Below are positions 29,336 to 60,693 of a DNA stretch of 64,000 nucleotides, one piece after another. Under the pieces are notes generated by a model, which was not told the origin of the DNA, searched no databases, and worked only from the letters and a program-made list of their open reading frames with translations. The DNA is from Heterodontus francisci (taxonomy: Eukaryota), in NCBI RefSeq assembly GCF_036365525.1, contig NC_090387.1, positions 76,197,300 through 76,261,299 on the forward strand. Direction: 5' to 3'. Position numbers and translations under genes: made by a program. The stretch's first letter is position 1, and every line of letters begins with the position of its first letter.

Positions 29336-29470
29336 TCAGCTTCTCTCTTTCTTTATCACGGTTACTTCAGCATAGACTGCGCTCTTGTCTTTAGATTTTG
29401 ATCTTTTCTTGGAACCAGCAAGCTGCAGAGCTGCGTAAGTCAACTTGTTATCACCGCCTCTTTGTTTAGT
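29336..29470 (-). CDS. Gene A exon 7: terminal coding exon with ITIM (LTYAAL) and ITIM/ITSM-like (AVYAEV) motifs
   Basis: Acceptor TTACTTTTGCAG, phase 0; TKQRGGDNKLTYAALQLAGSKKRSKSKDKSAVYAEVTVIKKERS then TGA; the seven exons sum to 1056 nt (351 aa plus stop) with no internal stop. Confidence 0.88.
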   Translation of the reverse strand, partial: TKQRGGDNKLTYAALQLAGSKKRSKSKDKSAVYAEVTVIKKERS

Positions 29471-29723
29471 CTGCAAAAGTAATATTTCGTATCACCCGTT
29501 AGTCTGTTGCCCACTCATTGCTTGATGCAAACGAGGTTTGAAAAAGGCTGCAGTGAAATTTCTTCTCATCAATTACCAACTTCAGATTGTAACCGGATTT
29601 TGTTTTGGTTTACTTCTCTCCGGTTTCTCCCCTCTCTGAAAACTGTTCAGGTTGCGTTTCAATTCTAGGCCCTCCCCAAAATTTTATTGGTATTCCGCTT
29701 TATCCTTCATATAAAATTAGTTC

Positions 29724-29852
29724 TGATGAAAGGTCACAGACCTGAACGTTAACTCTGTTTCTCTCTCCATAGATGCTGGCAGACCTGCTGAGTATTTCCA
29801 GCACTTTCTGTTTTTGTTTTCCAGATTTCCAGCATCCGCAGTATTATGCTTT
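29724..29852 (+). repeat. Short interspersed shark repeat (Penelope-like terminus)
   Basis: TGATGAAAGGTCACAGACCTGAACGTTAACTCTGTTTCTCTCTCC...TTTCCAGCATCCGCAGT; other copies at ~18515, 31245 (-), 41085 and 49370. Confidence 0.65.
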
Positions 29853-30683
29853 TATAAAATTAGTTCTCCTGCTGATGTAGCCCATTTAAAGGAGCAGATT
29901 GATACTTCAATTAAAATAGACAAATGAATTTCATACAGCCTGTTAAGGGTATTTGGAATGCTGATACTGTAAAGCACCGTTTTTAAGGCTCTGTTGCTTG
30001 AGCCTCGACAGCCAATGTGACCCTTACCCCAAGAATGAGGTTTCAAGAACACATTTTCAGCCGCCTTTCCCCTAGCCCCCGCCGATCTCTGAGACACGAA
30101 GGTCAAATATGATGAACCTTGGCTGAGATCAGCTGACATAGCACAGTGGTAGATGCAACCTGGGATCTTTGCATTTCCTGCGGTCCAGTGTCGCACCAAT
30201 TAACATTGCTTATGTATCAATGAATGATTTGAGCTGTACCTGGGCATACACCGTACTCTGCTCCTTCTGTTGGTGTTTCGGATTGCTCTTGGTCCTGGCT
30301 TCGACAGTGGCGTCAGGCAATTCTTGCTTCGTCTGTAAAATAGATATTTACCAGTCTTATCAGGTGAGTTTGTTATTTTTTAATTTGTAATCGTTGTTAC
30401 AGCCAGATCCGAAAATGAAAGGGGCTAATTTTGATTGACTGCTGCCGTGTAAAACGGATGGATAGACTCCGCAACCCGTTTTACATCTCTCATGATTTCT
30501 ATTTCCAACCAAGTCAGCGGGAGAGATGCGGAATCGCCTGCACTCGTTTTATACTGTCCCATAAAGTCAACACTACCTCGGTAAAATCTGTATAACTTGT
30601 TAGAGTTGACTCTGTTATCACAGAGTGTTGATTTTGTGTAGAAATGGTTTGGATATCATTCGCGCACCAATCGCTCGCCCTAC

Positions 30684-30794
30684 CTGGGAGTAGACGGTGT
30701 GCTCTATCTCTTGTCCAGTTTTGGGGGGTCCTTTGCCGTCTCTCAAGTTTCGGGTAGCGTCGGCGGCAAGTTGTTCACTTGGTCCTTGTGTAAC
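30684..30794 (-). CDS. Gene A exon 6: cytoplasmic exon ending in HTVYSQ
   Basis: Acceptor TCTTATTTTTACAG, donor GTAGGG, 111 nt, phase 0-0; VTQGPSEQLAADATRNLRDGKGPPKTGQEIEHTVYSQ. Confidence 0.8.
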
Positions 30795-31549
30795 CTGTAA
30801 AAATAAGATATGAAATACTGATAGCTGAGAGCCTAATACAGAAGCCAGCTATCATCAATTGGAACGGAGTCTTAAAGTGTAAATATGGAGACAGTAACCA
30901 ATAAAATTAGGGCTTAATTGCATTGTGTCCACTCACAATTATTTTATTCAATATCTCAATCATAGGGTGAGGAATAATGTTCCAAATATGAAATCCAGAG
31001 CGTTCAAATGTTCTTAATCCCCAGTCATCCCAGCCTATTGGAAGACCTTGCAGGCGGAGCCTGAAATTGTCCTCGTTCCACTTCCAGCCATTTCCATCCC
31101 CGGCTGGAAATCAGCCCTGAGACCCTGGCCATTCACCCCCTCCCCCGCAACTGCCTAACCCAGGGTTTCAGGGTGCAGGCCAATTAGGTACCGGTAGCAC
31201 TGTCCAGAGGTGGGGACGGCACCGGGACCTTCCGAAACTAAACGCAAAATACTGCGGTTGCTGGAAATCTGAAATAAAAACTGAACATGCTGGAAGTACT
31301 TAGCAGGTCTGGTAATCACTGTGGAGAGAGAAGCAGAGTTCACTTTTCAGGTCTTTGACCTCTCATGAAGGTCACAGGTCTGAAACGTTGCCTCCGTTTC
31401 TCTCACCTTCCTAATCTGTCTGGTTGTGCTGCACAACGTCTCAATTAAGCAACTGGGCATGTCCGATTTTTAAAATAATTTGAATTATGAAAGAGGACGT
31501 TGTCAGACCTATATGTTACAGAAAATACAAATATTTATCTACGCCTTAA

Positions 31550-32170
31550 AATCAAGACATAGAGTACGGAAACAGGGAATTTATAAAGAAAGAAGGAATT
31601 TATGCAAAACCTTTATAAATCACTGGCGATGTCACAGCCAGAGCATTGTATTGAATTCTGGACACCACACTTTAGGTAAAATGTCAAGGCCTTCGAGAGG
31701 GTGCAAAGGAGATTTACTGAAATGGTATCAGGAATGAGCGACTTCAGTTATGTTGGGCAGACTAGAGAATCTACGATTGTCCTCCTTATAACAGAGAACG
31801 TTAAGGAGAGATTTAATAGAGGTGTTCAAAATTATGAGAGGTTTTGATAGAGTAAATAAGGCGAAACTGATTTCACTGGTGGTTGGGTCAGTATCCAGGG
31901 GACAGAGATTTAAAATAATTGTCAAAATAATCAGGGAAGATGAGGATATTTTTAATGCAGCCCGCTGTTGTGATCTGAAATGCACTGCGTGAAAGGGTGG
32001 TGTAAGCAGATTCAGTAGAAACTTTCAAAAAGGATATATACTTGAAATTAAACAAAAATGTAGGGCTATTGGTAAAGAGTCAGTGAGTGGGCCTAATTGG
32101 ATAGTTATTTCAAAGAGCCGGCACAGGCACCATGCCCTCTTTCCTTGCTCTAGGAGTCCATGATTCTATG
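31550..32170 (+). mobile_element. Old CR1 3' fragment in gene A intron 5
   Basis: Degenerate ORF2 C-terminus (GGAGATTTAATAGAGGTGTTCAAAATTATG) and CATGATTCTATG tail. Confidence 0.75.
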
Positions 32171-32255
32171 AAATTTAATATCTTCTGGACTGAATGTAAA
32201 ATTTCTTGCTGTTCTCCCGCCTGTTTTTGGAACATGAAGAACATTGTCATCGTAC

Positions 32256-32299
32256 CGGCTTTTCAGCATGACCCACTTCCTCAGAATTTTTCTTGCTGC
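32256..32299 (-). CDS. Gene A exon 5: short cytoplasmic exon
   Basis: Acceptor CTTCTCTTTCCCTCAG, donor GTACGA, 44 nt converting phase 1 to phase 0 exactly as the flanking exons require; GSKKNSEEVGHAEKP. Confidence 0.75.
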
Positions 32300-32539
32300 C
32301 TGAGGGAAAGAGAAGTCCACATTGAACAGCTTAATCGGTATATAAGCAAAACAACTTCATGCTTTCGATGCTAAACACAGGTACTGTGTAAAGTAAGGAG
32401 ACTTGAAGGTACATATCTCTCTGAAGATGTTAAGCAGTACCAGCCATTACAGTGCAGCATGCTGTGCATTACTTTCTCATACCCTGCAGTGTCGCTGCAT
32501 CCAATGGAGTAGACCTTGCATTTGTGCGATAGTGTACAA

Positions 32540-33907
32540 CAGGGTTGTCAAATCTTTTCGCGTAGGTGCGGGGGGTGGGGGGTGGAGGGGGGGGGGGGGG
32601 GTGGGTGGTGGTTGGTGGGGGTGGCACGATACAATTTTTGTCTTACATAGAGGGCCAGTGAGACAATTTCGGAAAGATAAAGGCATTAAAAAATTATCTC
32701 ACTATTCATCAAAACAACAACAAATGTGCATTTTTGTGAGGAAGCTTTAAATAAGATGATTAATTTATTGACTTACTTTGTCATCACTATGTTGGACACT
32801 GATTTAGTGAGATACCTGACATTTTCTGCTTGCACAAGTAGTCAATATTTGCCCACTCACTAGTTGTAGTGATGTGGAATATTCTGGATAGATCTCCATC
32901 TGCCAGGAGTGATCTTGATCACTGTTTCTCCCTCTCTCTCCCTGTGTCCCTCTCCCTGTCTTACCCTGCTCTGTGTTGCCCCCCTCCTCTGTGTTGTTCT
33001 TGCTGTCTGTGTCCCCCGCTTCTCTCTCATCTCTCTCTCTCTGCCACCTTCTCAGTCACCCCGCCACCCCCCCGCCCCCCTCCCGCCCTTCTCTCTCTGA
33101 CAGGCAGCAGGAATGCTCAGCAGAGCAACTTTGTGGTTAGTCAGTTTTTAACCAAATCACAAGTTAGAGATACGAAATTTTTCATTGGCTTCTACTTCCA
33201 GACCGGCTTTTTAAAAAAATCGCGTCAGCTTCACGGCTGACAGGTGTTGGGCGCAGGCATAATCTAATTTGCATCTGTAATAGTCAAGAAATTCGAATTA
33301 TTAGAATCACTTTAAAAAAAAAGAAAAAAAAGTGGGTTTTCTCCGGGTGCTCCGGTTTCCTCCCACAAGCCAAAAGACTTGCAGGTTGATAGGTAAATTG
33401 GCCATTATAAATTGTCACTAGTATAGGTAGGTGGTAGGGAAATATAGGGACAGGGGGGGGATGTTTGGTAGGAATATGGGATTAGTGTAGGATTAGTATA
33501 AATGGGTGGTTGATGTTCGGCACAGACTCGGTGGGCCGAAGGGCCTGTTTCAGTGCTGTATCTCTAATCTAATCTAATCTAATAGCAGTTTCCTAGCTTC
33601 GGACTAATTCAGAGTTTTCCGGTGGGATCCGATTATTTTTATAAAGCTGCCGGAAAACCCTAAATCTGTCCTCATTCGGAAACTGCTATTCCGCCAGGCA
33701 GCACCTGTCAGCTGTGAAACTGATGCGATTAAAAAAAAAGCCAGTCTGGAAGAAGAATCCAATGAGAAGTTTCTTATCTCCGAAATTACCAATCATAGAC
33801 CCCTGGCGAGGATGAGGAACGGTCCGGTACAGTTTACATCCGTGGGCCGGATGGAAACCTTTGGCGGGCCGGATACTCGCCAGCCGGCTGTCCGTTGGAT
33901 AACCCCG
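32540..33907. mobile_element. Non-autonomous hAT-type DNA transposon containing a V-SINE
   Basis: Imperfect TIRs CAGGGTTGTCAAA / TTGGATAACCCCG; 8-bp flanks GTGTACAA / GTGTGAAA; the left ~600 bp is homologous to 62994 onward. Confidence 0.7.
33333..33583 (+). mobile_element. 5'-truncated HE1-type V-SINE
   Basis: V-core plus CR1-like tail ending in (CTAAT)n. Confidence 0.85.
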
Positions 33908-34392
33908 GTGTGAAACATGTAATAGAGAGTCAGCAGGCCATTTTACATCTCAAAATTACAATGGAAATAAAATCCAGACGAGATGTAAAATAGGTTGCCC
34001 CTACCAATTCGATATCACCCGTTTTATGTTATGGCAGAAAGTCAAATTTTACTTCAAAGTGCTTGCACTTCAGGATCTGGACTCGCACGGATAGCAAAAA
34101 AAAGTGTAAAACATTAAGGATTCCGGGTGTTGCAAAATAGAAGTGAAAAAGTCGAATGAATAGTTGGAATAGGAAGGTGAAATGTTTGCCTTTCAAAATC
34201 AGGTATATATGGTCATATTCAACCACCAATCATATAAAGAACTTGTGCTATCAGCTTCTTTCTTTAAAGATGCAGTAAGGTGCTCTTTATTCTTCTACAA
34301 TGAATGACGATTTACCTGACCTTTCTGTATTGTAAAAATACAACTGGGTCTTAGAAAATAAAAGTATTCGGTGGAATAAGAAATATTCTTAC

Positions 34393-34497
34393 CATTTGAT
34401 ACCTTTAATTTGAGTCTGGTCAAAATTATTATTAATAGTAAAATTGCCAGTATGCCTCCGGCACATCCAAAACTCAGCTGAAATTTATTATCAGTAC
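34393..34497 (-). CDS. Gene A exon 4: transmembrane exon (uncharged)
   Basis: Acceptor GATCCTGCAG, donor GTAAGA, 105 nt, phase 1-1; TDNKFQLSFGCAGGILAILLLIIILTRLKLKVSN, a hydrophobic stretch followed by basic stop-transfer residues. Confidence 0.88.
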
Positions 34498-34624
34498 CTG
34501 CAGGATCAACAGATAATTGAAATCAGAAACTGTAGAGCACAGCGAGATATACACACAGAGAATCGTGGGTCAGGCAAGGGAGAATGAGTTGCAAAGGTGT
34601 CTCTCGGGATAACGGCGTCTACTG

Positions 34625-37600
34625 TCATACAAATTAGGAGCAGGAACAGGCCACTCGGCCTTTCCAGTCTTCTCCACCAGTCAATAAGTTCATGGATGAA
34701 CTGATTACTGCACATTTCCACCTACCTGCGATAACCTTTCACGCCCTTGCTTAAGAAGAATCCATCTACATTTGCTTAAAAATATTCAAAGACTCTGCTT
34801 CCACTGCCTTTTGAGGAAGAGAGTTCCAAATACTCACGACCCCCTAAGAGAAAAAAAACCTCTCATCTCTGTCTTAAATGGGAGACCTCTTATTTTTAAA
34901 CAGTGACCCCTAGTTCAAGATTGTCCCACAAGGGGAAACATCCTTTTCACATCCACCCTGTCAAGAGCCGTCAGGATCATATATGTTTCAAGCAAGTCGC
35001 CTCTTACTCCTCTAAATTTCAGTGGATACAAGCCTTGCCTGTCCAATCTTTCCTCGGAAGACAGCCCGCCCAGTCCAGGTATTAGTCACCGAAACCTTCC
35101 CTGTACTGCCTCCAAATAAGGAGACCAGTACTGTACACAGTACTCCAGATGTGGTCTCACCAATGCCCTCTATAGCTGAAACATAACTCCCTACTTTTGT
35201 ATTCAATTCCGCTCACGATAAATGGTAACATTCTATTTGGCTTTCCTATTTACGTGCTGTACCTGCATACTCACCTTTTGCGATTTATGCACTAGGACAT
35301 CCAGATCCTTCTGCATCTCAGAGCTCTGCAATCTCTCACCATTTAGATAATATGCTTTTTTAAATTCTTCCTGCCAAAGTGGACAATTCCCCACTTTCCC
35401 ACATTATACTCCATTTGCTAGGTCTTTTCCCACTCACTAAACCTATCTATATCCCTTTGAAGCCCCCATATGTCCTCTTCACAAGTTACTTTCCTAACTA
35501 TCTTTGTGTCAACAGCAAATTTAGCAACCATACCTTCGGTCCCTTCATCTAAGTCATTTATATAAATAGGTATACCGTTTTGGATACTGTTGGGGGGGAT
35601 GGCCTATCAGGGGAAAACAACAGCAGCAGCCAGAGCATGGCACCTTGGCAGGGAGGGACAAAGCGCAGAAGAGCAATAGTTATAGGGGACTCTATAGTCA
35701 GGGGTACAGATAGGCGCTTCTGTGCAGGGTTGGCAGCTAAATGTTCCGGGATTTAGAAGCTTCAGGCGGGATCGAGGGGGATGTAAAAGGGGTGGGGGAG
35801 TTGCATTACTGGTTAAGGAGAATATCACAGCTGTACTGCGGGAGGACACCTCGAAAAGGTCATGCAGCAAGGCAATATGGGTGGAGCTCAGGAATAGGAA
35901 GGGTGCAGTCACGATGTTGGGGGTATTGTACAGGCCTCCCAACAGCCAGCAGGAGGTAGAGGAGCAGATATGTAGACAGATTTTGGGAAGATGTAAAGGT
36001 AACAGGGTTGTAGTGGTGGGTGATTTTAACTTCCCCTGGGACTCACTTAGTGCTAGGGGCTTGGATGGGGCAGAATTTGTAAGGAGCATCCAGCAGGGCT
36101 TCTTGAAACAATATGTAGATAGTCCAACTAGGGATGGGGCCGTACTGGACCTGGTATTGAGGGGTGAGCCCGGCCAGGTAGTCGAAGTTTCAGCAGGGGA
36201 GCATTTCGGGAACAGTGACCATGATTCCATAAATTTGAAGGTACTTGTGGATAAGGATAAGAGTAGTCCTCGGGTGCAGGTGCTAAATTGGGGGAAGGCT
36301 AATTATAACAATATTAGGCAGGAACTGAAGAATTTAGATTGAGGGTGGCTGTTTGAGGGTAAATCAACATCTGACATGTGGGAGTCTTTCAAACGTCAGT
36401 TGATTAGAATCCAGGACCAGCATGTTCCTGTGAGGAAGAGGGATAAGTTTGGCAAGTTTCGGGAACCTTGGATAACGAGGGATATTGTGAGCCTCGTCAA
36501 AAAAAAGGAAGCATTCATAAGGGCTGGAAGGCTGGGAACAGACGAAGCCTTTGAGGAATACAAAGACTGTAGGAAGGAACTTAAGCAAGGAGTCAGGAGG
36601 GCTAAAAGGGGTCATGAAATGTCATTGGCAAACAGGATTAAGGAAAATCCCAAGGCTTTTTATACATATATAAAGAGCAAGAGGGTAACCAGGGAAAGGG
36701 TTGGCCCACTCAAGGACAGAGGAGGGAATCTATGTGTGGAACCAGAGGAAATGGGTGAGGAACTAAATGAGTACCTTGCATCAGTATTCACCAAAGTGAA
36801 GCACTTGGTGGATGATGAGTCGAGGAAAGGGAGTGTAGATAGTCTCGGTCATGTCGTTATCAAAAAGGAGGAGGTGTTGGGCGTCCTGCAAAGCATTAAG
36901 GTAGATAGGTCCCCAGGGCCTGATGGGATCTACCCCAGAATACTGATGGAGGCAAGGGAAGAAATTGCTGGGGCCTTGACAGAAATCTTTGTATCCTCAT
37001 TGGCTACAGGGGAGGTCCCAGAGGACTGGAGAATAGCCAATGTTGTTCCTTTGTTTAAGGAGGGTAGCAAGGATAATCCAGGAAATTATAGGCCGGTGAG
37101 CCTTACGTCAGTGGTCGGGAAATTATTAGAGAGGATTCTTCGGGACAGGCTTTACTCCCATTTGGAAACAAATGGACTTATTAGCGAGAGGCAGCATGGT
37201 TTTGTGAAGGGGAGGTCGTGTCTCACTAACTTGATTGAGTTTTTTGAGAAAGTGACGAAGATGATTGATGAAGTAAGGGCAGTGGATGTTGTCTATGTGG
37301 ACTTCAGTAAAGCCTTTGACAAGGTCCCTTATGGCAGACTGGTACAAAAGGTGAAGTCACACGGGATCAGAGGTGAGCTGGCAAGATGGATACCGAACTG
37401 GCTCTGTCATAGAAGACAGAGGGTAGCAGTGGAAGGGTGCTTTTCTGAATGGAGGGCTGTGACTAGTGGTGTTCCGCAGAGATCAGTGTGGGGACCTTTG
37501 CTGTTTGTAGTATCTATAAATGATTTGGAGGAAAATGTAGCTGGTCTGATTGGTAAGTTTGCAGATGACACAAAGGTTGGTGGAGTTGCGGATAGTGATG

Positions 37601-40440
37601 GGGATTGTCAGAGGATACAGCAGGATATCGATCTGGAGACTTGGGTGGAGAAATGGCAGATGGAGTTTAATCCAGACAAATGTGAGGTAATGCATTTTTG
37701 GAAGGTCTAATGCCTGTGGGAAGTACACAGTAAATGGCAGAACTCTTAGGAATATTGATAGGTAGAGAGATCTGGGCGTACAGGTCCACAGATCACTGAA
37801 AGTAACAACGCAGGTGGATAAGGTTGTCAAGAAGGCATACGGCATGCTTGCCTTCATTGGTCGGGGCATAGAGTATAAAAATTGGCACGTCATGCTGCAG
37901 CTGTACAGAACTTTAGTTAGGCCACACTTAGAATATTGCATGCAATACTGGTCGCCACACTACCAGAAGGACGTGGAGGCTTTGGAGAGGGTACAGAAGA
38001 GGTTTACCAGGATGTCACCTGGTCTGGGGGGCATTAGCTATGAGGAGAGGTTGGATAAGCTCGGATTGTTTTCACTGGAACAACAGAGGTGGAGGGGCGA
38101 TATGATAGAGGTTTACAAAGTTATGAGCGGCATGGACAGAGTGGATAGTCAGAAGCTTTTTCCCAGGGTGGAAGAGTCAGTTACTAGGGGACATAGGATT
38201 AAGGTGCGAGGGGCAAGGTTTAGAGGGGATGTGCGAGGCAAGTTCTTTACACAGAGGGTGGTGAGTGCCTGGAACTTGCTGCCGGGGGAGGTGGTGGAAG
38301 CAGGCACGATAGAGATGTTTAAAAGGCATCTTGACAAATACATGAATAGGAAGGGAATAGAGGGATACGGTCCCCGGAAGTGCAGAAGGTGTTAGTTTAG
38401 ACAGGCTTCGTGATCAGCGCAGGCTTGGAGGGCCGAATGACCTGTTCCTGTGCTGTACTGTTCTTTGTTCTTTGCTCTTGTTCTGTGTAAAAAGTTGAGG
38501 TCCCAGCACAGATCCCTGTGACACACCACTCGTTACATTTTGCCAACCAGAAAATGACCCATTTATGTCTATTCACTGTTTCCTGCTAGCTAGCCAATCT
38601 TCTATCCATGCCAATATGTTACCCCCTACATTATGAGCTTTTATTTTCTGCAATACTCTTTGATGTGGCAGCTTATCAAATGCCTTCTGGAAATCTAAGT
38701 ACAATACATCGACCGGTTCACCTTTCTCCACAGCACATGTAACTCCCTCAAAGAACTTCAATAAATTGGTTAAACATGATTTCCCTTTCACAAAACCATG
38801 TTGACTCTGCCTGATTACCTTGATTTTTCTTTCTAAATGCCCTGCTATAGCATCTTTAATAATAGCTACTAACATTTTCCCTAAAACAGATGTTAAGCTA
38901 ACTGGCCTGTCGTTTCCTGTTTTCTGTCTCCCTTCCTTTTTGAATAAAGGAGTTACATTTGCTATTTTCCAATCTAACAGAACCTTGCCCGATTCTAGGA
39001 AATTTTAGAAAATTAAAATGAACACATCAACTCTCTCACTAGCCGCGTCTTTTAACACCGTAGGGTGAAGTCCATCAGGACCCGGGGACTTGTCAGCCCG
39101 CAGCTCCAACAGTTTGTTAGGTACAACTTCCCTGGTGATTGTAATTTTCTTGAATTCCTCTCTCCCTTCCAGTTCCCGATTTACAGCTAATACTCCTCCA
39201 CCTTTTCCTCAATAGTGAAGACAGTTGCAAAATATCTGTTCAATTCACATGGCATCTCCTTATTATTCATTATTCATTCCCCAGACTCACTTACTATAGG
39301 ACCATCGTGCACTTTGTTAACTCTTCTCTTTTTAAAATATTTATAGAAACTCGTACTCTCTGTCTTTATATTGGTAGCTAGCTTTCTCTGGAACTCTAAT
39401 TTTACCTTTCTTATTATGTTTCTAGTCATTCTTTGCTGTGTTTTATATTCTGTCCAATCTTCTGACCTGCCTCCCATCTTGGTGCAATTATAGGCTTTTT
39501 CCTTAAGTTTGAAACTATCTTTCACTGTTTTAGTTAACCACGGATGGTGGCTCTCACCTTTGGAATGTTTCTTTCTCGTTGAAATGTATCTATTCCGTGT
39601 ATTCTGAAATATCCCCTTAAATGTCTGCCGCTGCATCTCTATTGACCTATCTCTTAATCTAATTTGCCAGTTCACTTTAGCTAGCTCTACTTTCATGCTC
39701 TCATAATTGCCCTTATTTAAGTTTAACTCTTCTCTCCAGTCCACTCTTTTCTCCTTCAAACTGAATGTAAATTTGGATCGCTACTACCTAGGGGTGCCTT
39801 AACTATGAGGTCATTCATTAATCCTATCACGTTGCACAATACCAGGTCTAGTGTAGCCTGCTCTCTGGTTGGCTCCAGACCATATTGTTCCAAGAAATTA
39901 TCCCGAAAACATTCTATGTACTTCTCATCTATGCTACCTCTCCACATCTGATTTTTCCAGTCTATATGTAGGTTAACCGTGCCCCCCCCCCCCCCACCAT
40001 TGTTATCGCTGTACCTTTCTGACAAGCTGCCGTTAGTTCTTTTATACCCCGTCCCACTGTGTGGTTAATGTTAGGTGGCCTGTACACCACTACTAGAAGT
40101 GACTTCTTGCCTTTATGATTTCTCATTCCTACCCAAACTGCTTCTACATCCTGGTCTCCTGAACTTAGGTCATCACTCTCTATTGTGCTAATACCATCAT
40201 TAGTTAACAGAGCTACCCCTCTACCTTTTCCTAGCTTCCTGTCTTCCTAAATGCCATGTACCTTCAAGATTCAGGTCCCAATCTATGTCGCCCTGCATCG
40301 TGTCTCTGTACTGGCTGTCAGATCGTACTTATTTATTTCTATTTGCGCTCTCAGTTCATCTGTTTTGTTTTGAATGCGACATGCATTCAGATAGTGCTTT
40401 TAGTTTTGTCCTTTTATTAGTTTTGTAACCTCTGGCCTTA
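34625..40440 (-). mobile_element. Older CR1 (endonuclease and RT remnants) split by a younger CR1
   Basis: Minus-strand ORF2 remnants (38573-38875, 39274-40025) and 3' tail near 34630; the sequence is continuous across the 35568-38485 insertion. Confidence 0.88.
35568..38485 (+). mobile_element. CR1 with ORF1 esterase remnant and near-complete, disrupted ORF2
   Basis: AIVIGDSIVRGTDRRFC (GDS esterase motif) joined by a deletion to the endonuclease; ORFs 35722-36342, 36376-37710 and 37814-38395; (TTGTTC)n tail. Confidence 0.93.
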
Positions 40441-41507: not shown

Positions 41508-41804
41508 CTCGATTGACGGTGTAGTTGACACTGGCAGGTACCACAAGAGAGACATGAGATGCCAGGCAGGTGTAAACAACTTCATTCGGGGCAGGTTGTA
41601 CTTCTTCCAAAAAACTGGAAACCTCATAAAGTCCTTCCGCGCTCTTGTTTTTCACAGTTTCTATTCCGCTCAAAATTTCGACACCATCCCTTAACCAGGA
41701 GATTTCTAAATGCTCCGGGTAAAAGGCAGCCGTTTTACACTCGAGTTTCAGAGAAGTCGAAGAAATTCCTTCAAGAGGAGCGATTTTCAGGGGGGTCGGG
41801 GGAG
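41508..41804 (-). CDS. Gene A exon 3: C1-set Ig domain
   Basis: Acceptor TTTTATCTGTTAAAG, donor GTACGT, 297 nt, phase 1-1; PPTPLKI...LECKTAAFYPEHLEISW...GLYEVSS...YTCLASHVSL, with C1 hallmarks CxxxxFYP and YxCxxxHxSL. Confidence 0.92.
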
Positions 41805-49070: not shown

Positions 49071-50967
49071 AGCAACTGCTCCAGCCAACAACTCCCCCAT
49101 CTCTCCACCATTTCCCCAACCGTGGAATGTAGTGCATTTCCTGTTTCTTTGCCCACCATGCACTAACATTCTCTCTGTAAATGTCTCTGCTTCTGCATTC
49201 TCCCTTCCATAAAACTTTTGGTTTCTCCTTCCTAATACATCTTTTTTTGACTGGATGTATTTTTCTTTTCGGTTAGGTCTTTGGAAAACTCTTTAGGAGG
49301 TCTTTCGACTTTAAAGGCCTTATATAAATGTAAGTTGTCATTTGTGTCCTCCTCTTTATTTTTCCAGTCCTGATGAAGGGATATGGCCAAACTATTAACT
49401 TATTTGTTCCCTTGGGAGATGTTGATCGACACTGAGTATTTCCAACATGTTCTGTTTTACATTACATAGAATTACATGGAGAACATTCGCCCCAACTGGT
49501 CTATGCTGCTATTTATGCTCACATGAGCTTCCTCCCACCCCTTTTCATCAATCCCTATCAGCATATTCTTCCATTTCTTTTTCCCTCATATGCATATCCC
49601 GCTCCCCTTTTAAATACATCTCTGCCATTCACCTCAACTACTCAATTTTCTACTCATTCGGTAAAAGTTTCCCCTGAATTCCATCTTGGATATATTTATG
49701 ACTATCTTATATGTCTACCCTCTAGTGCTGGACTCCCTCACAAGTTGAAACATTTTCTCTTGGCCTACTCTATCAAACCCGCTCATAATTTCAAAGACCT
49801 CGATCAGGTCACCCCTCAGCTTTCCCTTTTCTAGAGAAAAGAACCTCAGACTGTTCAACCTTTCCTGATAAGTCTATCTTCTCAGTTCTGGTATTATCCT
49901 TGTGGATAGTTTTGCACCTGTTCCAGTGCTTGTATATCCCTTTTTTAATATGGGAAGTAGAAATGTGCACAGTGCTTCAAGTATAGTCTAATCAAGATGC
50001 AACACAAGTTTAACATAACTTTGCTGCTTTTTAATTCTATCCATTTAGAAATTAACCCAATACTTGTCTTACTTTTTCTGGCCTTATTAATCTGCGTTAC
50101 CTGCTTTTAGTGATTCATGGAGTTGCACCACTAACTCGTTTCTTCCCTCTGCCCCAATTAGACTCTTATTATCCAAGCAGTATGTGGCCTCCTTACTCTT
50201 CCTACCAAAATGCATCGCCTCACGCTTATCTATATTGAAATTCAATTGCTAATTACACACCCACTCTGCAAGTTTATTACTGTCTTCTTGTATTTTGCTG
50301 CATTCTTCCTTAGTATTAATCATAGCCCCCTTTTTAGTGTCACCACAAATTTTGGTTGTGCTACCGATTTCTGAGCTTTGGCTTCAGATTTCCAGCAGTT
50401 TATATATTTTTTCTTTTTTGCATGGTCATGCTGCTGAGTTGGTGCGAGGCCAGGCTGACAAAGGCCTGTAGTGTTTCTGTGAAGCCTAAAGAGGCACCCT
50501 TGCTCTTTTCAGCAGTTGAACGCTGCAACAAGGTGACATAAATTTAAAATTAAAGCCAGGCCATTCAGGAGTGAAACCAGGAAACACCCTTTCCCACAAA
50601 GACTCACAGAAAGCTGGAACCATCTTTCCAAAAGGCTGTGAATATTTGGAAAATTGGAGCCTTCAAGACAGAGATGGTAGATTTATGTTAGTTAACAGTA
50701 TCAAGGGATACAGAACGAAGGTAGCTAAATGGAGTTGAGGTGCAGACCAGCCATGACCTAATTAAATGACGGATCAGGGTCTAGAGGTTGAATAATCAAT
50801 TCCTGTTCTTATGGCATGGCTACAGAAACTATTTAAAACCCTTCCACCCCATTAATCCCACTTTTCCAAAGGAAAAATGTACCTTTGTTTCTCCAGGTTT
50901 CACAGCTCTCTCACAGATGTTACATGGGAGATGGCAGAACACTGCTCGAATTATTGGCTGTACATCT

Positions 50968-53900
50968 TGTTATGATCCTGTAGTTTTTCCCCCCAGGAGG
51001 AATGTGGTGTACCTTTAAGGCTGACAAAGTAGCTGTACTGCTTTAAGGCAACAAGTCCCAGAAACTGAGTCAAAGAATGCATTCTCCTTGCCCCGGGATA
51101 CAGCCATTCGGGGACGGTGATTGCAAGAGGGCTTTCTGGTTGCCTGAGATACAGCCATTCAGACTGAGCATCAAGAGATACATTGTTGCCGGATCTGAAT
51201 TTAGATCAGGACCCAGTGAGAGCTTATTTAAATTTATTTCGGCTCTTCCTAATTTTGAGGAAAGGGACGTAGAGGCATTTTTCATATGTTTTGAAAAAAT
51301 AGCCAAACAGGTGAAATGGCTGAAAGAAAGCAGGATACTGCTTATTCAGGTCAGGTTGGTCGGCAGAGCTCATGAAGCTTATGTCATGCTTTCTGAAGAG
51401 GCTTCTTCAGATTATGAGATAGCAAAAAAGGCTATTCTCCCTGCGTAAGAGTTAGTCCCCGAAGCTTACTACCAGAGGTTTAGGCAAATACGGAGATTGG
51501 CTGGGCAGACATATATAGAATTTGAGAGGGTGAAGCAAATGAAGTTTGACCATTGGATACGGACATTAAAGATAGAAACCACATTCTTTCAGTAGTGAGA
51601 ATTCATATAGATACCTGAAAGTTTTGAAAGCTAGGAAAGCAGCAGAGATTTCTGATGATTTTGAGCTTGTGAATAAGCCAACCTATTTTGTCCATCACCC
51701 CCATAAAGGATAGAAAGTATGAGAGTGAAAGGAAGGCAAGTAGCCAGGGACAAGAAGGAACAGCTGGGAAGGCCCCAGGATCACCTCATCAGGTCAGAAA
51801 AGAAGGTGCTGAAGGTAGATGTGAGATTTGCAAGCAATGTTACCAGTGCAACAAAACGGGTCATCTTCGTTCAGAATGCTGGAAATTGCGAGGTAAACCC
51901 ATAGGACTTGTTCGGGTACGCAAAGTTAGTGCAGAGGAAAAGACTCTGACTGAGATTATAGCAGACCAGACTATGGCTTAAATGACAGCTGTGAATGTGA
52001 AACCAGATACTAAAACTGGAAGGTGTGTAGAGGTTAAGAATAAAATGCCTGCGGGTTATAATGAATTTTTGTCAAAGGCAGAAGAACACCATATCATGTA
52101 AGTGAGGCAGGAAAACCTATCATTATACTCAGAGCCACAGGAGCAAACCAAACACTCTTGCTGGGGAAAGATATAAGGTTTCCACCAGAGAGTGCCTTGA
52201 ATGCTAAAGTTTTAGTCCCTGGAATTGGCGGGGTGTGTATAAAGTACGCGTAGAGAGTGACTTACTATCTGGGATAGTTACTGTTGGTGTTGCCCACAGT
52301 TTACCAGTAAAGGGAATTGATCCACCCCTAGGAAGTGATTTGGTAAGATCAAAAGCATCAGTTTCTCCTATCGTTACCAAGTGAAATTAAGGAAATGGAG
52401 CAGTTACAGGAAAAGGCCCTCTAATTATATGGGGTGCTGGTGGATTCGTGGTAATGCCACTGGACTAGTAATCCAGAGGCCCTGGTTAATGCTCTGGGGA
52501 CATGGGTTCGATTCCTACCATGGCAGATGGTGAAATTTGAATTCAATTAATAAAAAAATCTGGAATTAGATGTTAGTCTAATGGTGACCATGAAACCATT
52601 GTCGATTGTTATAAAACCCATCTGTTTCACTAATGTCCTTCAGGGAAGGAAACTACCATCCTTGCTGATCTGGTCTATATGTGACTCCAGACCCACAGCA
52701 AAGTGGCTGACTCTTAACTGCCTTCTGAAATGGCGTAACAAGCCACTCAGTTCAAGGGCAATTAGAGTTCAAGGGCAATTAGGGATGGCCTAGGATCCCA
52801 CGAAAAAAAAACATTCCCGAGCAATGGCTAAACAGGATCCATTGTTGGAGATAAAAGTGGCATATTTGGGGATTTAGATAATCCAAATGAGTTGTGTAAC
52901 AGATTGTCTATCCTTGCAGCCCAGCAAGCTGATCCAGAGATATACCGAATAACACAGATGGTTCTGTCAGAAACTGAGGCAAAAGGAGTTCTGGAAGGCT
53001 ATTATATGCTAAAAGGAGTTTTGAGGAGGAAATGGAGACCACCTCATAGACCTGCCAACCAAGACTGGAATATCGACAAGGATTATTAAGGTTAGCACAA
53101 GACATTCCTTTTGCAGGACATAGGGGAATTCGGAAGACCAAACCATGCATAATTATTACTGGCCAGGTCTTACAAAGGATGTGAAACAATTTTGTAGGAC
53201 ATGCCATACCTGTCAAATGGTGGGAAAACTACAACCTACCATAAAACCAGCACGACTAGTTCCCATACTCCCAGCGACTGAGAAACCATTTAGCAGGGTA
53301 TTAGTAGGCTGTGTAGGACCCTTGCCGAAATCAAAAGTGGATCATCAGTGCATACTTACTATCATGGATATGGCTACTTGATTTCCAGAGGCCATTACTT
53401 TGACGATAATTACTGCTGGAGTAGTAGTAGTACGGTTAACCCAATTCTTTATGAGATATGGGATGCCACTTGAAATTCAATCAGATAAAGTTTCTAATTT
53501 CATGGCTGGGATATTTCAAGAAGTCATGGATAATTTGGGGATTAGACAGTTGAAATCTTCAGCCTATCACCCACTGTCACAGGGAGCTTTGGAGAGATTT
53601 CACCAGACTCTCAAAACGATGATTAGAACATGCTGTTACGAATATCCACCTGACTGGGATAAAGGATTATACTTTTATTTGCCAACAGAGACTCAGCGAA
53701 TGAATTTTATGGACATGAAGTCAGAGATCCTCTAAAACTTATAAAGGACATATTCTTGGAACAGAAGAATGAATCGTCGCTACTAGACTGTGCTCCAGGA
53801 AAGGCTCATAAAAGCTTGTTGTGTAGCTCAGGAACACCTTAAATCATTCCAAGCCAATATGAAAAATTGGGCAGAAAAGAATACAAAAGCCTGTGATTTT

Positions 53901-55360
53901 CAACCAGAAGATGACGTATTAGCGTTGTTACCATTGCAGGGAGAACCATTAAAAGTACGGTTCAGTGGCCCATATATAGTGGTCAAAAGAGTGGGTCAGG
54001 TAGATTACATCATTTAAACCCCTGATCGCCAGAAGAAGAACCGGTTGTGTCACATTAATATGCTCAAACAATATTACTGCAGGGAGGAGAATAAGCCAGT
54101 ACAGGTATGTTAGGTAAGCGGGGCTGTTCAGAAGGAAAATGACAGTGAGGATGAGGCAGAAGTTGGCCTAGGAAATTCTCAGATTGAACCTCCAACTATT
54201 TGATTAGCAAATACAGAATGGCGAGGAAAATTAAACAATCGGCTTTTATACTTAGAGGCAAAACAGTGAGAAGTCCTAACCAGGGTTTTCACAACGTTTC
54301 AAACAGTTTGTAGGGATAAGCTAGGATGTACAACCTTAGCCATAGATGATGTGGGTATAGGGGGAACCATTCCTTTAAAACAACATCCTTGCTGCTTAGG
54401 TCCAGACAGACAGGCCCAAGTGGAAGCAGAGTACAATGCATGCTGAAGGTCAGCTAGTTGAACCCAGTCAGGACAGCTGGAATTCGCAGATGGTCTTGAT
54501 GTCTAAACCTGGTGGGATGGCTCAAACTTGCATAAACTCTAGAAAAGTCACTGTGGTAAAAAGGCAGACTCCTATCCAAATTCTTATCCAAAGGACTGAA
54601 TGGGCAGCGTGGGCAACATAATGTACCTTAGAGAGGCAACCGTGTAGGAGGGATACTGCTAAATTCCTTTGACACACCAGGGTGACAAAAAATCAGCTTC
54701 TGTTACACCGGACAGGGTTTTCCAGTGTCAAGTGATGCCACATAGGTTAAGGGGTACTCGAGAAATTTCTCAGAGAATAATGAACCCAGTAGTGGCGAGT
54801 GCTCCTAGCTGTGCAGTTCACCTGGTTGAGGTGATGGACAATAGGGAGATTTGGAAGGAAAACACAAAACAATTGGTAGACAATGCTTGGAAATTTGACA
54901 TGGGTTAATTGGGACAATCTTTTGAAAATTTAAAGCCGAAATGTTCTGGTGGAGCTTGTTGCTGTAGTCTTAACATTTTAGAAAAGTGCGTGCCTACAAA
55001 TGTGAAGTAATGTTTTTGCGTTTTTTCTTTCACGTTGTATTTTTTACCCATTGTAATGAAATGCATTTCAAAAATGGCGTTTCATTATGCCAGGGGCGAA
55101 GGTGTTATGATCCTGTAGTTTTTTTTCTGGAAAGAATGCGGTGTGCCTTTAAGGCTGGAAAAGGAGCCATACTGCTTAAAAGCAACAAGCTCCAGGAACT
55201 GAGTCAAAGAATACATTCTCGTTGCCCCATGATACAGCCATTCGGGGACTATGATTCAAAGAGTCCATCCTCGTTGCCCAGGAGGCAGCTATTCGGACTA
55301 AGCATCGAGAGATATATTGTTGCTGAATGACCTTTAAAACTAATTGAAAAGCTGGCTTTT
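50968..55360 (+). mobile_element. Second Gmr1-like Gypsy element with both LTRs truncated
   Basis: LTR starts TGTTATGATCCTGTAG at 50968 and 55103 with purine tract at 55091-55102; gag CYQCNKTGHLRSEC, protease, integrase (HHCC, EIQSDKVSNF, GALERFHQTLK, FSGPY), then RT; SINE inserted at ~52430-52810. Confidence 0.92.
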
Positions 55361-55363
55361 GTG

Positions 55364-56236
55364 AGCCGTAGTGCAAAACTGGCGACAGCGAAATATTTTT
55401 GAATTCTGCCTAATTCGCTTTCCCACAATGAAAATAACAAATCGGACAGAGCGTAAAACGCGCTGCAGATTCGCGATGGCCCGAATCATGCTGCTGTCCT
55501 TATGTTAGGAGGCTTTTGGACTCAAGGGAGGGGGACATCACAGCCAAACACTATCCTAAACTCCACACATGAAATCTTTCTGAAGGAATCACTGATAGTG
55601 ATCGGGAGATTGGCCTGGTTGATTCCACCCTTCCGAGGAAATAATTACGTAACACGAATCTACTGCCCCACCTGCAAAATCAGCTCATTCAGCAAGTCGT
55701 AGGATGGAATCTGAGATCTTCCTACACTGTGCATACATAACAACAAGACCATTGGTTATTGGCTATGTTAAACCAGAAACAGATTGGGAAGTGCACTTGT
55801 TTCAACCTTTATCGAGTTTATCGGGTTATCCCCAGTCTAATAATAGCAGGATCATCAGCAATTCATTTTGTTGGTAAGCATGGTTAAATCAGACTCCAAT
55901 CTAACTTACAGGTTATCAATAAACAAACATCTGGTAGATTGATTCTATTGATCTTTGCGGACACGTTTTCTGGTCACCCTGGCCTAAACATAAAATATGG
56001 TTCTGAATATTTTACTGAATTGCTCAATATGTATTGACCAAGCTGAACAGTCCGGAAAACAAAGTGCGGAGGGAGGTATCTGCTCTCGCTTGGTGTAGCC
56101 AAATCACTATATAACAACAATGCATTTACAATATCCCCAAACATACATCAGAACAATTCTTCCTCATTTGAAGCAACCTGAGTGCCAGTCGTTGCTCAGT
56201 TGGTAGGACTCTGCTTCTGTGATGCAAGGCTGTGGG
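55364..56236 (+). repeat. Local segmental duplicate of ~444-1328
   Basis: Colinear, diverged copy over ~0.85 kb; ORFs 580-780 and 55502-55702 are near-identical translations of the non-coding copies. Confidence 0.9.
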
Positions 56237-59200
56237 TAGTTAACTTACCTCCCGATCCATCAGAACTGCTGAAAGTGAAGGGACGAGAATGATATTTAAC
56301 TCTGAATAATATGGGAGCTGATACCCAGTATATTAATGTCGCTGTTTCTACATAAACCCCCCACTATCCCCTTCTGAGCAGGATCACTGCCAGGGTTCTA
56401 TACACGGGAGGGGAATTCATGCAGAAATAGAGAGGAGGTTTAGGACAGAGAAGCGCTCACTGGGGTACTAACCTGTGGAAAGAATGGGTTTATTGGGCCG
56501 AATAGGCTTCTTGTTTTTATGTTTATTCACACTGCTCTTTCAGGCTGTGTATTTCATGTACAAGTCCTTGTTGGGTGTTGTTGAACACTGGTACTAGGTT
56601 CTTCCTGTTTGTGGGCACACATTGTATGGTTTGCTCTAAAATGTGCTCCAATGCGATGTGTCTAATAAATGTTTGTTAACTCAAATTGTTGTAATTAATT
56701 TACTGTTTTACTCCGATGTGATCGGTTGTTGGGGCAGAGAAGGATGTCGAGGGACAGATATGGCATCGGTAACGAGCACCTCCCTCCCCCCATTCCTCGA
56801 AATCACACTGTGAGATTCTAGTGAATGAATCCTTGGCATGTTCTTCTGAAGTACCTTCCTTTACTATCTTGGCAGGTTTTCCACTGCTTAGAGGCAACTA
56901 ATTTTTTTTTGTGCCTTTCTTGGCCCTGTCATTTTCTCCAACTACCGCTCATCACTAACTTGTTTTTTCTCTCTGAGACGCTGCCAATCGTTGCCATTTC
57001 CACTGCTATCTCTTCCACTATTCCCAGCCTGAAACCCTGCATCCAGGCTTCGACAACATAAATCACACTGGTCGGAGTAACTTATAAAGTTGGTTGTAAC
57101 AGACCACGGCTGGCTGTCCCGCAACCTCCCCATTGTCTTCAGCACTATTAACTGCACCACTCCCTAACAGTGTCTATATCCATGGCATTGTTCTCACAGG
57201 ATTCCAATCTACTTGTCACTTCATTCAGTTTATATTACCACCAGTCGCGCGTCTATTCGCATGTCGGCGCAGTCACTGCTGTATATCCCTATGCTACATG
57301 TTTGGTACCATTACCTTCATTGATTTTCAATCCTTTTGTTACATCAGCATGTGGACCGATGATTCTCTGCTCTAACTATCGCTTCTCTTGATCTCAAAGG
57401 TGTCAGTCACCACTTCTGCAGATGGCTTTCTGATCTTTAGATATGGATCTGTCAAAATTACCTCCAGCTAAATGTCGCTAAAACTGAAGAAGCTATCTTC
57501 ACTTTTTATGAACCCCTACATATCATCAAACTGGCCAGCGGCCTCGGATCAAGGCTTGAAATGTGGATCCTTGGTGTACTGCTCAAATCCAGACTCAGTC
57601 TTCTTGGCCACCCTTTCATCCCCCTGGACCTCTCTCTCCGGCACCTACAACATTTTATCAATTCATCCTCGCCTTCAAATGCCTCCTCTATCCTTGGTTT
57701 TCTCATTCCCTCTCTTTGACCGGTGCTCTGCAAAGAGCCTTGGGACGTTTCTTTGCATATAGCGAGCGCTACAGAAATGGAAGTTCTGTTACTAAAATAG
57801 CAGAAGGAATTTGAGAAATTCCCAGTAATCCCGTAATGATTTCAAAGCCTCGACTGGTCTAACGCGTGTGGGATATGGGATACAATTAACAGGTTGAATA
57901 CATTTTACAAGTGGGTTCCTGCCAGTACTGCAACAGTTCAAGTCGTTCACCAGGCTGCTCTCTGTTTTCAGTAATAAACTCCATTGCCTATTCAAGTTGC
58001 ACCGTTACATTTCAAGCACTCAGTAGCAGTAAGGAGCAGCCCCGCTGATCGCCATTCTTGTTACTGATGAAATCTTGCATCCAAACCCAAAAAACGTCAT
58101 GAATAACTTCAAAGTATCATAACACTGACCAGTTTCTGCTCTTTGGGTAAAGGGTAAAGCACAGTTCAGCCAGGTTACTGAGTTGGATAATTAGCCATGA
58201 TCATAATGAATGGCGGAGCAGGCTCGAAGGGCCGAATGGCCTACTCCTGCTCCTATTTTCTATGTTTTTATGTTTCTATGTAATATAGCCTGCTTTTTTC
58301 GTCGTTTAATAGCCAGATAGCGAACAGACCTTTTATCCTCTGCACTTACAAGGCGAGGCAAGAAATCCTGAGAGAAACGTGTGAGCTGTGTATAGGTGGC
58401 AATCTGAGGGATGAAAAATGCAGCTCAAATGTCCACATTGCCACATGAAAGATGGATTCACAGTTTCATTCCCTTATACCAGTGATCATGTTAAAAGTAC
58501 CTGAAGATTAACTGTCTTCCCTCGCAGAGGCGGCGCGAATACTAACTAATGCTCAACACCAGATTTCAACACCTGGAACTGCGAATGAGACTAACTGCTT
58601 GCAGAAAAATGTTGAATCTTTCCATCCAATGAGACGCGAATTATTTCCTCCTGTACTTGCTGAGGCAGACCTTTGTTTGCAAATTATTTCATTTAATATT
58701 CTTGGAATGTTTCCGATTGCATTGACATTAAATCCAGTTCAAAATTAGGAGCAACGCTCTTGACAGATTAATGGAGCGGAAAGCGGCGCTCAAACCTCAT
58801 TCGTTGTATGAGAAAACAAGTTAATAGCTCCGATAAAATGACAGAGAGGAAGTGAATATAAACGTCCAAGTGTTGGTGTAATATTACAAACGCACACACG
58901 TGTTAAAAACTATTAATTATTGAGATATTATAACATAAAACAAACGAGTTAACTCATCCATTAAATAATTGTTAGAGGAATTTTAATATACACCATAGTA
59001 TGTAATTTTCAGGCTGAAGTGTTTTTAAAAAAAAACTCAACAGACGCTTGCAGATTTATTCACTTTTGTTGATTATATGAGTTTTTTCATTCGGGATTTT
59101 TAAAATTGATTTTGATTTAGTTTGTGCATTTTGCCTGAATGTTTGGTGGTCAGCTGGGGAGGAGAGCAAACACACTGGGTGTCCAAATATTAAATACAAA

Positions 59201-59997
59201 TCAAGGAATGGGGAGTGTGTGGGAAGGGGTGGAAGAATCCGTTCATGCTCGGATACAAATAATTACAAACTGACTGGCAATATTTGAAAAGAGATGAATT
59301 TATTAGCGAAAGCAGGTAAGAATTGAGGGGAAATAATGCAGACATTCCATGGGATAGTTCAGCCGGGACAGCTTTCACCCTGAAGAGAAAGTGCCCTCTC
59401 CGCTGTGGGGAAAACGTTCAGTGGGAGCTGCAGTTACTGGTCTGGGAATTGAATACACACTGACTCGTCATCAGGTGGCAGCTCCCAGAGGTGGCAACCG
59501 GAGCTCGGACCTTATACAAACATTTCATAAAATCCTGGGTTTCTTTTACTGTAGACAGACACCGGCCTTTCTCCAACGGGTAATCGATTTTTGTGGAGTT
59601 TTCTAGCCCAGGAGATGTCTGTAACAACTCAGTAACATAGTTTCTAACTCCCTCCCCTCTTTCTCCTCACAGCTATACTCCGTGAGTGAAATGATCCTGG
59701 TCTCAATAACAGAAACCAATGGATCTTAGCTCTGGATCCCGGCTCTATCGGTCTGAATTCACTCCTGTGAGAGCCACTATGCCTGGTGCCAGCACTGGCT
59801 TAGTGATTTCAGCGTAAATCTTTAGATCATTGCGAAGGCTCCAATCTATCACCCTCTCACTAACTTGCAACATGGCTAAGAATTGAAAAGCATAACAAGC
59901 ATCCAATGGCGGGAAGAGCTGCGGCTACATTTCCGGATCTCTCCCACTGCGCGAGATCTTTCCAGCAGGGGGTTTTAAATTCAATGTGATTTCTTAC

Positions 59998-60315
59998 CGG
60001 TTACCTGGAGCCTTGTGCCGGTGCCATTCCCCACTTTGTCCGCTATCTTCACTTTGCAGTAATACGTGCCGGAGTCCGAGACATCCACATTGAAAAGGCG
60101 AAAGACGGCGCTAGCTCGATTTCGAATTTCAAACTGATACCTGCTGTCCTTTTTCGACTTGAGGAAGCTTTTCTCACCGTCCTTCCACCAGTGCACTCGG
60201 ACACTGAATATATCTTTAGCAAACGGGAAGCTGCAGTAGAAGGTCACATTGGCACCTATGCTATCGTTCAGATAAGGGGGGTACTGTTGCACATTGAGCC
60301 TGGGAGCACCGGTAA
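59998..60315 (-). CDS. Gene A exon 2: V-set Ig domain with germline-joined J-like segment
   Basis: Acceptor TTTCTTTCTCGACAG, donor GTAAGA, 318 nt, phase 1-1; VTGAPRLNVQQYPPYLNDSIGANVTFYC...VHWWK...DSGTYYCKVKIADKVGNGTGTRLQVT with canonical Cys/Trp/DxGxYxC and GxGT motifs. Confidence 0.93.
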
Positions 60316-60647
60316 CTGTCGAGAAAGAAACAGTTCAATTTATATAGAAAACAACAGAAAGGCTGCAAATACTCAGGCAGAATGAGGGCATTGACATTGA
60401 CAATAGTAACATTTCATGCTATTAATCTTTTATCAGAACTGGCAAAGGTTAAAGATTTACATCGCGCCTTCCGACCATCTAAATGATTGGGGCAGCATTA
60501 AGAGAGAATGGAGAAGGGAAGAAACTTTCAAACAGAGAAGAGGGAATAAACAGAAGTAGAGGCGGAGCAAAACAGGGTAAAATACATTCGTAAAATCTCT
60601 TTATGCAAAGAATAAGGGTTCTATTCTGGTGAAGCAGCTTGACTCAC

Positions 60648-60693
60648 CTGCAGAGACGATTGCTAGGATGAGCAGGAGAATACAGCTGGACAT
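60648..60693 (-). CDS. Gene A exon 1: signal peptide of V-C1-TM-ITIM Ig-superfamily receptor (SIRP/NCR3-like)
   Basis: ATG at 60693, MSSCILLLILAIVSA plus 1 nt, then GTGAGT donor; 46 nt, phase 1; hydrophobic leader 332 bp upstream of the V exon. Confidence 0.88.

Follow-up and report, generated by a model that had tools for sequence, protein, structure and literature searches.

A horn shark V(J)-C1 receptor gene of apparently mosaic origin in a large multigene family of cartilaginous fishes

Non-rearranging genes in which a joined VJ segment is followed by a C1 domain are the nearest living models of the gene that was split by the RAG transposon to yield antibodies and T-cell receptors. Discussion of such a VJ-C1 precursor has so far been based on SIRP, NKp30, UrIg/UrIg2 and PRARP. 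Exons of this layout lie on the minus strand, between positions 29336 and 60693, of a 64,000-nucleotide stretch of the genome of the horn shark Heterodontus francisci (NC_090387.1, positions 76,197,300 to 76,261,299; the whole stretch is called the window below, and positions are counted from its first letter). The locus raises the question of whether these exons form one gene and, if so, what kind of receptor it encodes and where its parts came from. We conclude, with a probability of about 0.7, that they make up one eight-exon gene for a type I, SIRP-like V(J)-C1 receptor of mosaic ancestry, which carries an inhibitory-type tail and belongs to a multigene family of cartilaginous fishes. Such a product would resemble a single chain of an antibody or T-cell receptor that is joined in the germline and equipped with a predicted "off-switch" tail. 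The gene is real, already annotated and an ordinary member of this large chondrichthyan V(J)-C1 family of inhibitory type. It represents no new kind of receptor, and what it offers is a clear case in which two branches of the family appear to have exchanged a V exon.

On the minus strand between 60693 and 29336, eight exons with AG and GT at every internal boundary join into a product of 382 amino acids. This product is identical, letter for letter, to the database protein P0162, which is RefSeq XP_067905822.1 of H. francisci; since the exact product is already in RefSeq, the gene is not an unannotated one. Its automatic RefSeq name, "NCR3 ligand 1-like isoform X2", is misleading. A preliminary description of the locus had joined seven exons into a stop-free protein of 351 amino acids with splice phases 1,1,1,1,0,0, and a local script reproduced that join exactly (1056 nt, 351 amino acids, a terminal stop only, the same phases). 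Those seven exons are real, but the join misses an additional exon at 30332-30240 (93 nt, phase 0/0, TKQELPDATVEARTKSNPKHQQKEQSTVYAQ), which falls between its exons 6 and 7 and was recognised because a close paralogue carries the equivalent segment. The additional exon is present in both RefSeq isoforms that use exons of the window (X1 and X2). The 351-residue form remains in frame, but no annotated isoform matches it.

Exon 1 (60693-60648) provides the start codon (ATG at 60693), the split leader MSSCILLLILAIVSA and one further nucleotide, and ends at a GTGAGT donor in phase 1; its residues 1-15 match P0162 at 100%. Exon 2 (60315-59998, phase 1/1) holds the end of the leader and a complete V-set domain with a J-like G strand. 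After an 18.2-kb intron, exon 3 (41804-41508, phase 1/1) encodes a C1-set domain that runs from LECKTAAFYPEHLEISW to YTCLASHVSL. It is followed by exon 4 (34497-34393, phase 1/1) with a short stalk, the transmembrane helix and the stop-transfer sequence KLKVSN, and by exon 5 (32299-32256, phase 1/0), a cytoplasmic exon of 44 nt that encodes (G)SKKNSEEVGHAEKP. Exons 6 (30794-30684), 7 (30332-30240, the additional exon) and 8 (29470-29336, with the stop codon at 29338-29336) each contribute one tail module. A six-frame profile scan of the window detected no other V or C1 exon, and no relic of one, save those of a second paralogue (gene B), which likewise has a V exon and then a C1 exon. The sole V exon upstream of the C1 exon within the window is therefore the one at 60315-59998. 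The second annotated isoform, X1 (P0222, XP_067905821.1, 383 amino acids), combines exons 1-7 of the gene with a different last exon, which XP_067905823.1 (P0161, "isoform X3") shares in identical form. P0161 is a complete V-C1-transmembrane-tail paralogue that the window does not encode; it is placed downstream of 29336 on the minus strand, and the X1 splice is either a trans-paralogue read-through or an artefact of gene-model building. A version of the transmembrane exon ending at 34403 in phase 0 was dropped, as the paralogue P0074 shows a KxSxG extension together with the 44-nt exon.

The domain assignments follow from profile and fold comparisons. Pfam places exon 2 in the V-set (E 5.9e-10, above the cut-off) and exon 3 in the C1-set (E 2.3e-8; 34.7 bits against a cut-off of 21). 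In P0162 the split leader covers residues 1-16, and the V domain shows the canonical Cys43, Trp58, Asp96, Tyr100 and Cys102. It ends, as read directly from the sequence, in the J-like motif GNGTGTRLQVT (60031-59999), which follows the pattern GxGTxLxV, includes an NGT sequon and is contiguous with V; residues G113, G115, L118 and V120 of this motif are nearly invariant across the family. Since J directly continues V within exon 2, the two are not separated by a gap that could hold a recombination signal, and rearrangement of this VJ segment is, as judged from the exon itself, neither needed nor possible. The C1 domain bears FYPxxLxIxW and YTCxxxH. Direct reading of the transmembrane core LSFGCAGGILAILLLIIILT (34477-34418) shows it to be uncharged, which implies that no charge for adaptor pairing is present. 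An AlphaFold2 model built with a 45-sequence family alignment reached predicted local distance difference test scores of 95-98 over most of both immunoglobulin (Ig) domains and of 82-94 in a few blocks, and placed a transmembrane helix at residues 225-253 ahead of a disordered tail. When the model was used for fold searches, residues 21-121 matched V domains, including that of human NKp30 (Z 13.8, 27% identity), and residues 119-220 matched best the membrane-proximal domains of major histocompatibility complex (MHC) class II proteins, Ig light-chain constant (CL) domains and IgNAR constant domains (Z 14.3-15.7). These searches confirm the V and C1 folds; the families themselves are statistically tied, at Z 13.6-15.7. 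The results bear out three claims of the preliminary description, namely a non-rearranging V domain that ends in GNGTGTRLQVT within its own exon, a single C1 domain, and a transmembrane segment followed by a tail with tyrosine motifs.

The tail of P0162 is 126 residues long and contains the repeated modules of the family. From Callorhinchus to rays, the family plan consists of an immunoreceptor tyrosine-based inhibitory motif (ITIM; xxYAxL), about 23 residues, TVYxQT, about 14 residues, LTYAAL, 21-23 residues and xxYAE[V/I/L]. The last module alone is complete in the horn shark gene: exon 8 encodes LTYAAL (Y350, 29443-29426) and, 21 residues on, AVYAEV (Y371, 29380-29363). In both upstream modules the leading tyrosine is replaced by aspartate. 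Exon 6 reads LAADATRNL and then TVYSQ (Y305), exon 7 reads LPDATV and then TVYAQ (Y336), and in the paralogue P0151 the corresponding segments are LTAYATLNL and FPYTTV. Y305 and Y336 are kept in the conserved TVY(S/A)QT motif. By this comparison the gene shows a stepwise, graded loss of ITIM tyrosines. The inhibitory tail proposed earlier thus has as its basis one canonical ITIM, that of Y350; the two upstream modules are without their leading tyrosine. A separate observation concerns the sequence (S/H)TVY(S/A)QTKQ (P0162 residues 301-308 and 332-339; positions 30707-30684 and 30263-30240, each completed by the next exon), which is conserved from Callorhinchus to rays and matches neither the ITIM nor the immunoreceptor tyrosine-based switch motif. 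It is split after the glutamine by a phase-0 intron, and read-through of that intron after TVYxQ would put valine next, giving TxYxxV.

Where the gene belongs was examined by homology searches in which the queries were single exons or P0162. A search of 1.8 billion representative sequences with the V exon returned many single-V proteins of 260-400 amino acids. The relatives are RefSeq models from H. francisci, Heptranchias perlo, Callorhinchus milii, Mobula, Narcine, Mustelus and Hemiscyllium/Chiloscyllium, and automatic annotation has named them inconsistently, as SIRP-alpha-like, NCR3LG1-like, tapasin-related and Ig lambda-like ("Ig lambda-1 light chain-like" in several). Since the automatic names of close paralogues disagree, the RefSeq name carries no weight. 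Local phmmer searches over the fetched proteins identified at least 112 with both a related V and a related C1 domain, and all V-C1 relatives whose species was looked up come from a chimaera, a shark or a ray. P0162 itself matched proteins of H. francisci, Heptranchias, Scyliorhinus, Mobula and Callorhinchus with E values from 3.6e-146 to 1e-50, and it has the family layout of leader, VJ, C1, transmembrane segment and tail, with one exon per domain and phase-1 introns between.

Comparison with solved structures places this family among several known ones. A profile of 45 family sequences matched an Ig lambda-containing chain best (E 7.8e-39) and the shark UrIg2 V-C1-C2-C3 structure second-best (E 2.7e-36), followed by SIRP-alpha (2wng, E 2.9e-30, with an alignment that spans V and the first C1) and SIRP-gamma (E 5.5e-26). 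Single lambda light chains scored about 92 bits across V and C1. UrIg2 was again second-best when the C1 exon alone was compared with the PDB (E 1e-10), and in the ESM Atlas SIRP-alpha clusters (score 0.96) ranked with the closest of the named clusters. For the V exon and for a V-only profile, NKp30 and SIRP fell outside the best 60 PDB matches, which were generic Ig matches. By profile, then, Ig lambda chains, shark UrIg2 and SIRP-alpha appear to lie at much the same distance from the family. We call the receptor "SIRP-like", and not an orthologue of SIRP or NKp30, because Ig lambda chains and UrIg2 score equally or better. The earlier proposal of a SIRP/NCR3-related V-C1 family in cartilaginous fish is supported by the V-C1 relatives counted above, by the SIRP-alpha-like and NCR3-like names of members in RefSeq and by the SIRP-alpha matches of the profile and in the Atlas, but for the reason just given this does not amount to membership of SIRP or NKp30. 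A Callorhinchus protein named "NCR3-like isoform X2" (P0217) is a C1-less isoform (V-transmembrane-tail) of a family member; chondrichthyan "NCR3-like" automatic names can therefore stem from exon-skipped V-C1 genes.

The two Ig domains of the horn shark gene point to different ancestries. Its V domain is 75% identical to P0200 (XP_067905725) of H. francisci, 67% to P0203 of Scyliorhinus torazame and 57% to P0004 of Heptranchias, and 41-45% to P0151, P0160, P0161 and P0163. The C1 domain shows the converse, with 85-91% identity to P0151, P0160, P0161 and P0163, and 34-43% to P0200, P0203 and P0004 (34% to P0200). The V and C1 trees disagree accordingly. In the V tree the gene is sister to P0200 with a support of 97 in the approximate likelihood-ratio test (SH-aLRT), and the V lineage to which it belongs adjoins the slowly evolving P0011/P0187 lineage. 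The other members of this V clade all have a PWWIY-type anchor and differ from the gene in both C domain and tail. In the C1 tree the gene falls inside a clade specific to H. francisci, with a Heptranchias sequence just outside. Forcing the V domain onto the partners of its C1 cost 87.6 log-likelihood units, with a p value of 1e-53 in the approximately unbiased (AU) test. The gene thus appears to be a mosaic, with leader and V from the P0200 lineage, and C1, transmembrane segment and tail from the lineage of P0151, P0160, P0161 and P0163. The trees suggest that the latter source was a young H. francisci clade formed by these four proteins, and they give a clear polarity, by which the hybrid would be the derived state. 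Recombination or unequal crossing-over within intron 2 is the simplest and a likely origin of the hybrid; such an event stays in frame because these introns are all of phase 1. The mosaic origin is a new finding of this analysis, as are the corrected eight-exon model and the graded loss of ITIM tyrosines.

The product of the gene is predicted to be built like, and to work like, a SIRP with one C1 domain. The V domain would bind a ligand on a cell surface or a pathogen. Upon engagement, a Src-family kinase would phosphorylate Y350 in LTYAAL and Y371 in AVYAEV, and the phosphorylated pair, with its spacing of 21 residues, could, like the paired tyrosines of SIRP-alpha, recruit SHP-1 or SHP-2 by docking their tandem SH2 domains. 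Docking of either phosphatase would then damp the activation of the leukocyte that carries the receptor. Since neither upstream module keeps its leading tyrosine, the brake is expected to be weaker than that of relatives in which two or three modules are complete.

Mosaic ancestry, taken by itself, would also be expected of a wrongly joined model of two gene remnants. The join between V and C1 might be a computational artefact, in which an orphaned P0200-type 5' end has been connected to a 5'-truncated P0151-type paralogue, leaving a decaying pseudogene or partial transcripts only. Besides the discordant ancestry of V and C1, such an artefact would account for the 18.2-kb intron with its LTR (long terminal repeat) retrotransposon gag and integrase pieces that separates the two exons, for the loss of the leading tyrosine in two of the three tail modules and for the use of another paralogue's last exon in RefSeq X1. 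It would also agree with the state of the neighbouring gene B, most likely a pseudogene, which has two frameshifts. Moreover, three sequencing runs of uncertain type contained next to no words of the V region. However, the eight exons are all open, with canonical splice sites and matching phases, and the V exon retains every invariant residue of the family and an intact donor despite an amino acid divergence of 25% from its nearest relative. Gene B shows what decay looks like at this locus, and the V exon of the main gene is unlike it; nor was a relic of a second V or C1 exon for the main gene detected anywhere in the window. We consider an artefact of this kind unlikely. A different alternative is suggested by the name "NCR3 ligand 1-like", namely that the product is not a receptor at all but a B7-type ligand displayed to NKp30-type receptors of other cells. 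The best two-domain superpositions of the model were indeed with B7-H6 and another B7-type checkpoint protein (Z 14.8, root-mean-square deviation 3.5 over 193-202 residues, 24% identity). Pfam also gives weak matches to CD80-like and butyrophilin C domains, and the tail of B7-H6 has a tyrosine motif as well. These Z values are, however, tied with those of dozens of other Ig chains, and the contradictory automatic names of the paralogues leave the name without weight. The V domain has a full GxGTxLxV J motif, which B7 V domains are not known to have, the C1-set match (E 2.3e-8) is far better than the C2-set_2 match (E 0.008), and the paired-tyrosine tail fits the plan of SIRP-alpha. A B7-type ligand is thus improbable, and clearly more so than a false join.

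Against the interpretation as one mosaic receptor gene with an inhibitory-type tail, several other points have to be weighed. The V-to-C1 splice across the 18.2-kb, retroelement-filled intron 2 is drawn from the RefSeq model and from the architecture of the family, and the last exon that isoform X1 borrows from the out-of-window paralogue indicates that paralogy has influenced how the gene models were built here. The reverse AU test, in which the C1 of P0162 was held with the C1 domains of its V partners, was not rejected (p 0.40), probably because the P0200-type C clade hangs on a long branch, and the groups compared in the AU tests were named after the trees had been seen. Y350 in LTYAAL is the one tail tyrosine that lies in a canonical ITIM, and the ligand, the cell type and the binding of phosphatases are all matters that we infer.

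A stronger version of the single mosaic gene holds that it is a functional, natural "domain-swap" partner of its V relatives, in which leader and V of P0200 type were moved by recombination in intron 2 onto the C1-transmembrane-ITIM cassette of the other lineage. The P0200-type lineage is described with its own C domain, a PWWIY anchor and a non-ITIM tail. We put this version forward tentatively, as a possibility that is less probable than not. If it is true, a pair of receptors whose binding domains are related (75% identical) would give different signals, and moving V exons from one constant cassette to another would be a means by which cartilaginous fish diversify antigen-receptor-like genes that are joined in the germline. 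Such shuffling would be the germline equivalent of combinatorial joining, and paired receptors could arise through it instead of through the usual mutation of the transmembrane segment. As a separate observation, the minus strand at 34691-34623, about 130 bp upstream of the transmembrane exon in use, shows a weak and statistically non-significant similarity to the PWWIY-type transmembrane exon of the P0200 lineage (E 0.34; 10 of about 24 residues, ...DWW...SGLFLLL..T), and it may be the relic of an older anchor exon.

The likeness to SIRP lies in an N-terminal V domain with a J-like G strand (GNGTGTRLQV, 60031-60002), a C1-set domain that starts with (V/A)PPT and a single transmembrane segment. 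The SIRP-alpha tail has two ITIM-type tyrosine pairs (four tyrosines), and it is mirrored by the repeated paired tyrosines of the shark family (xTYAxL, about 23 residues, xEYAx[VIL]). In contrast to the V-C1-C1 layout of SIRP, the horn shark gene has one C1, with no further C1 match within 29336-60693, and this copy keeps one canonical ITIM only. A 2026 survey dated the SIRP family to tetrapods (PMC13262535). With NKp30 the gene shares a non-rearranging V domain of VJ type with an NGT sequon inside the J motif; the structure-based identity is the 27% given above, at a Z of 13.8 that is tied with many others. The two differ in that the horn shark gene model has a C1 domain, an uncharged transmembrane segment and an ITIM tail of its own, whereas mammalian NKp30 is V-only and signals through a transmembrane arginine and CD3-zeta/FcR-gamma. 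No MHC marker was found within the 64-kb window. A shark NCR3 family is reportedly the subject of a paper by Kinlein et al. 2021, and the V-C1 branch may already be named there.

UrIg and UrIg2 are, like the horn shark gene, non-rearranging elasmobranch genes with VJ in one exon, a split leader and C1-type domains. Nurse shark UrIg2 has nine C domains and UrIg has several (PMC12227049), and neither is known to have an ITIM tail. The horn shark gene differs from both by its single C1, and its family forms a multicopy array with diversified V domains. With Ig lambda and T-cell receptor chains the gene has in common the order and fold of V, J and C1, with a C1-set domain after VJ. It differs from them in that V and J are contiguous in one exon without rearrangement and in that the receptor has its own transmembrane segment and signalling tail, with no sign of a partner chain. 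For chicken PRARP a single V domain and no C1 is known, and the second domains of teleost NITR are of I-type. These genes, compared here by description only, resemble the horn shark gene in coupling a germline-joined VJ domain to an inhibitory tail. PRARP and NITR have been listed with SIRP and NKp30 among the VJ-type genes of the immunoglobulin superfamily (PMC11599192). As for B7-H6 (NCR3LG1), the two-domain superposition mentioned above is tied with others, and the J motif is present in the horn shark V domain.

These comparisons set beside the genes on which the precursor debate has relied a large, fast-evolving family of cartilaginous fish that combines the VJ-C1 layout with a SIRP-like tail of inhibitory type and is filed under contradictory automatic names. 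V-exon exchange and the step-by-step disappearance of ITIM tyrosines are both relevant to the question of how families of this kind may gain diversity and graded signalling without rearrangement.

Gene B occupies 9851-2645 of the window, likewise on the minus strand. Its V exon (about 9851-9532) carries two frameshifts, near positions 9795 and 9660, and arginine stands in place of the first tryptophan of the invariant WW. The C1 exon (2932-2645) is open, with aspartate in place of the conserved tyrosine of YxC. Among RefSeq proteins, XP_067906047/48 ("tapasin-related protein-like", V-C1 without a transmembrane segment) come closest; since the identity is 73-86%, gene B is a different copy from these. 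Retroelements fill two introns of the main gene, at 35722-39004 and 51688-53735. Intron 3 contains a long interspersed element on the plus strand, with endonuclease (35722-36342) and reverse transcriptase (36376-37710), and a further reverse transcriptase fragment on the minus strand (39004-38576). The LTR-retrotransposon pieces in intron 2 include a gag zinc knuckle at 51688-51981 and an integrase zinc-binding domain at 53145-53381.

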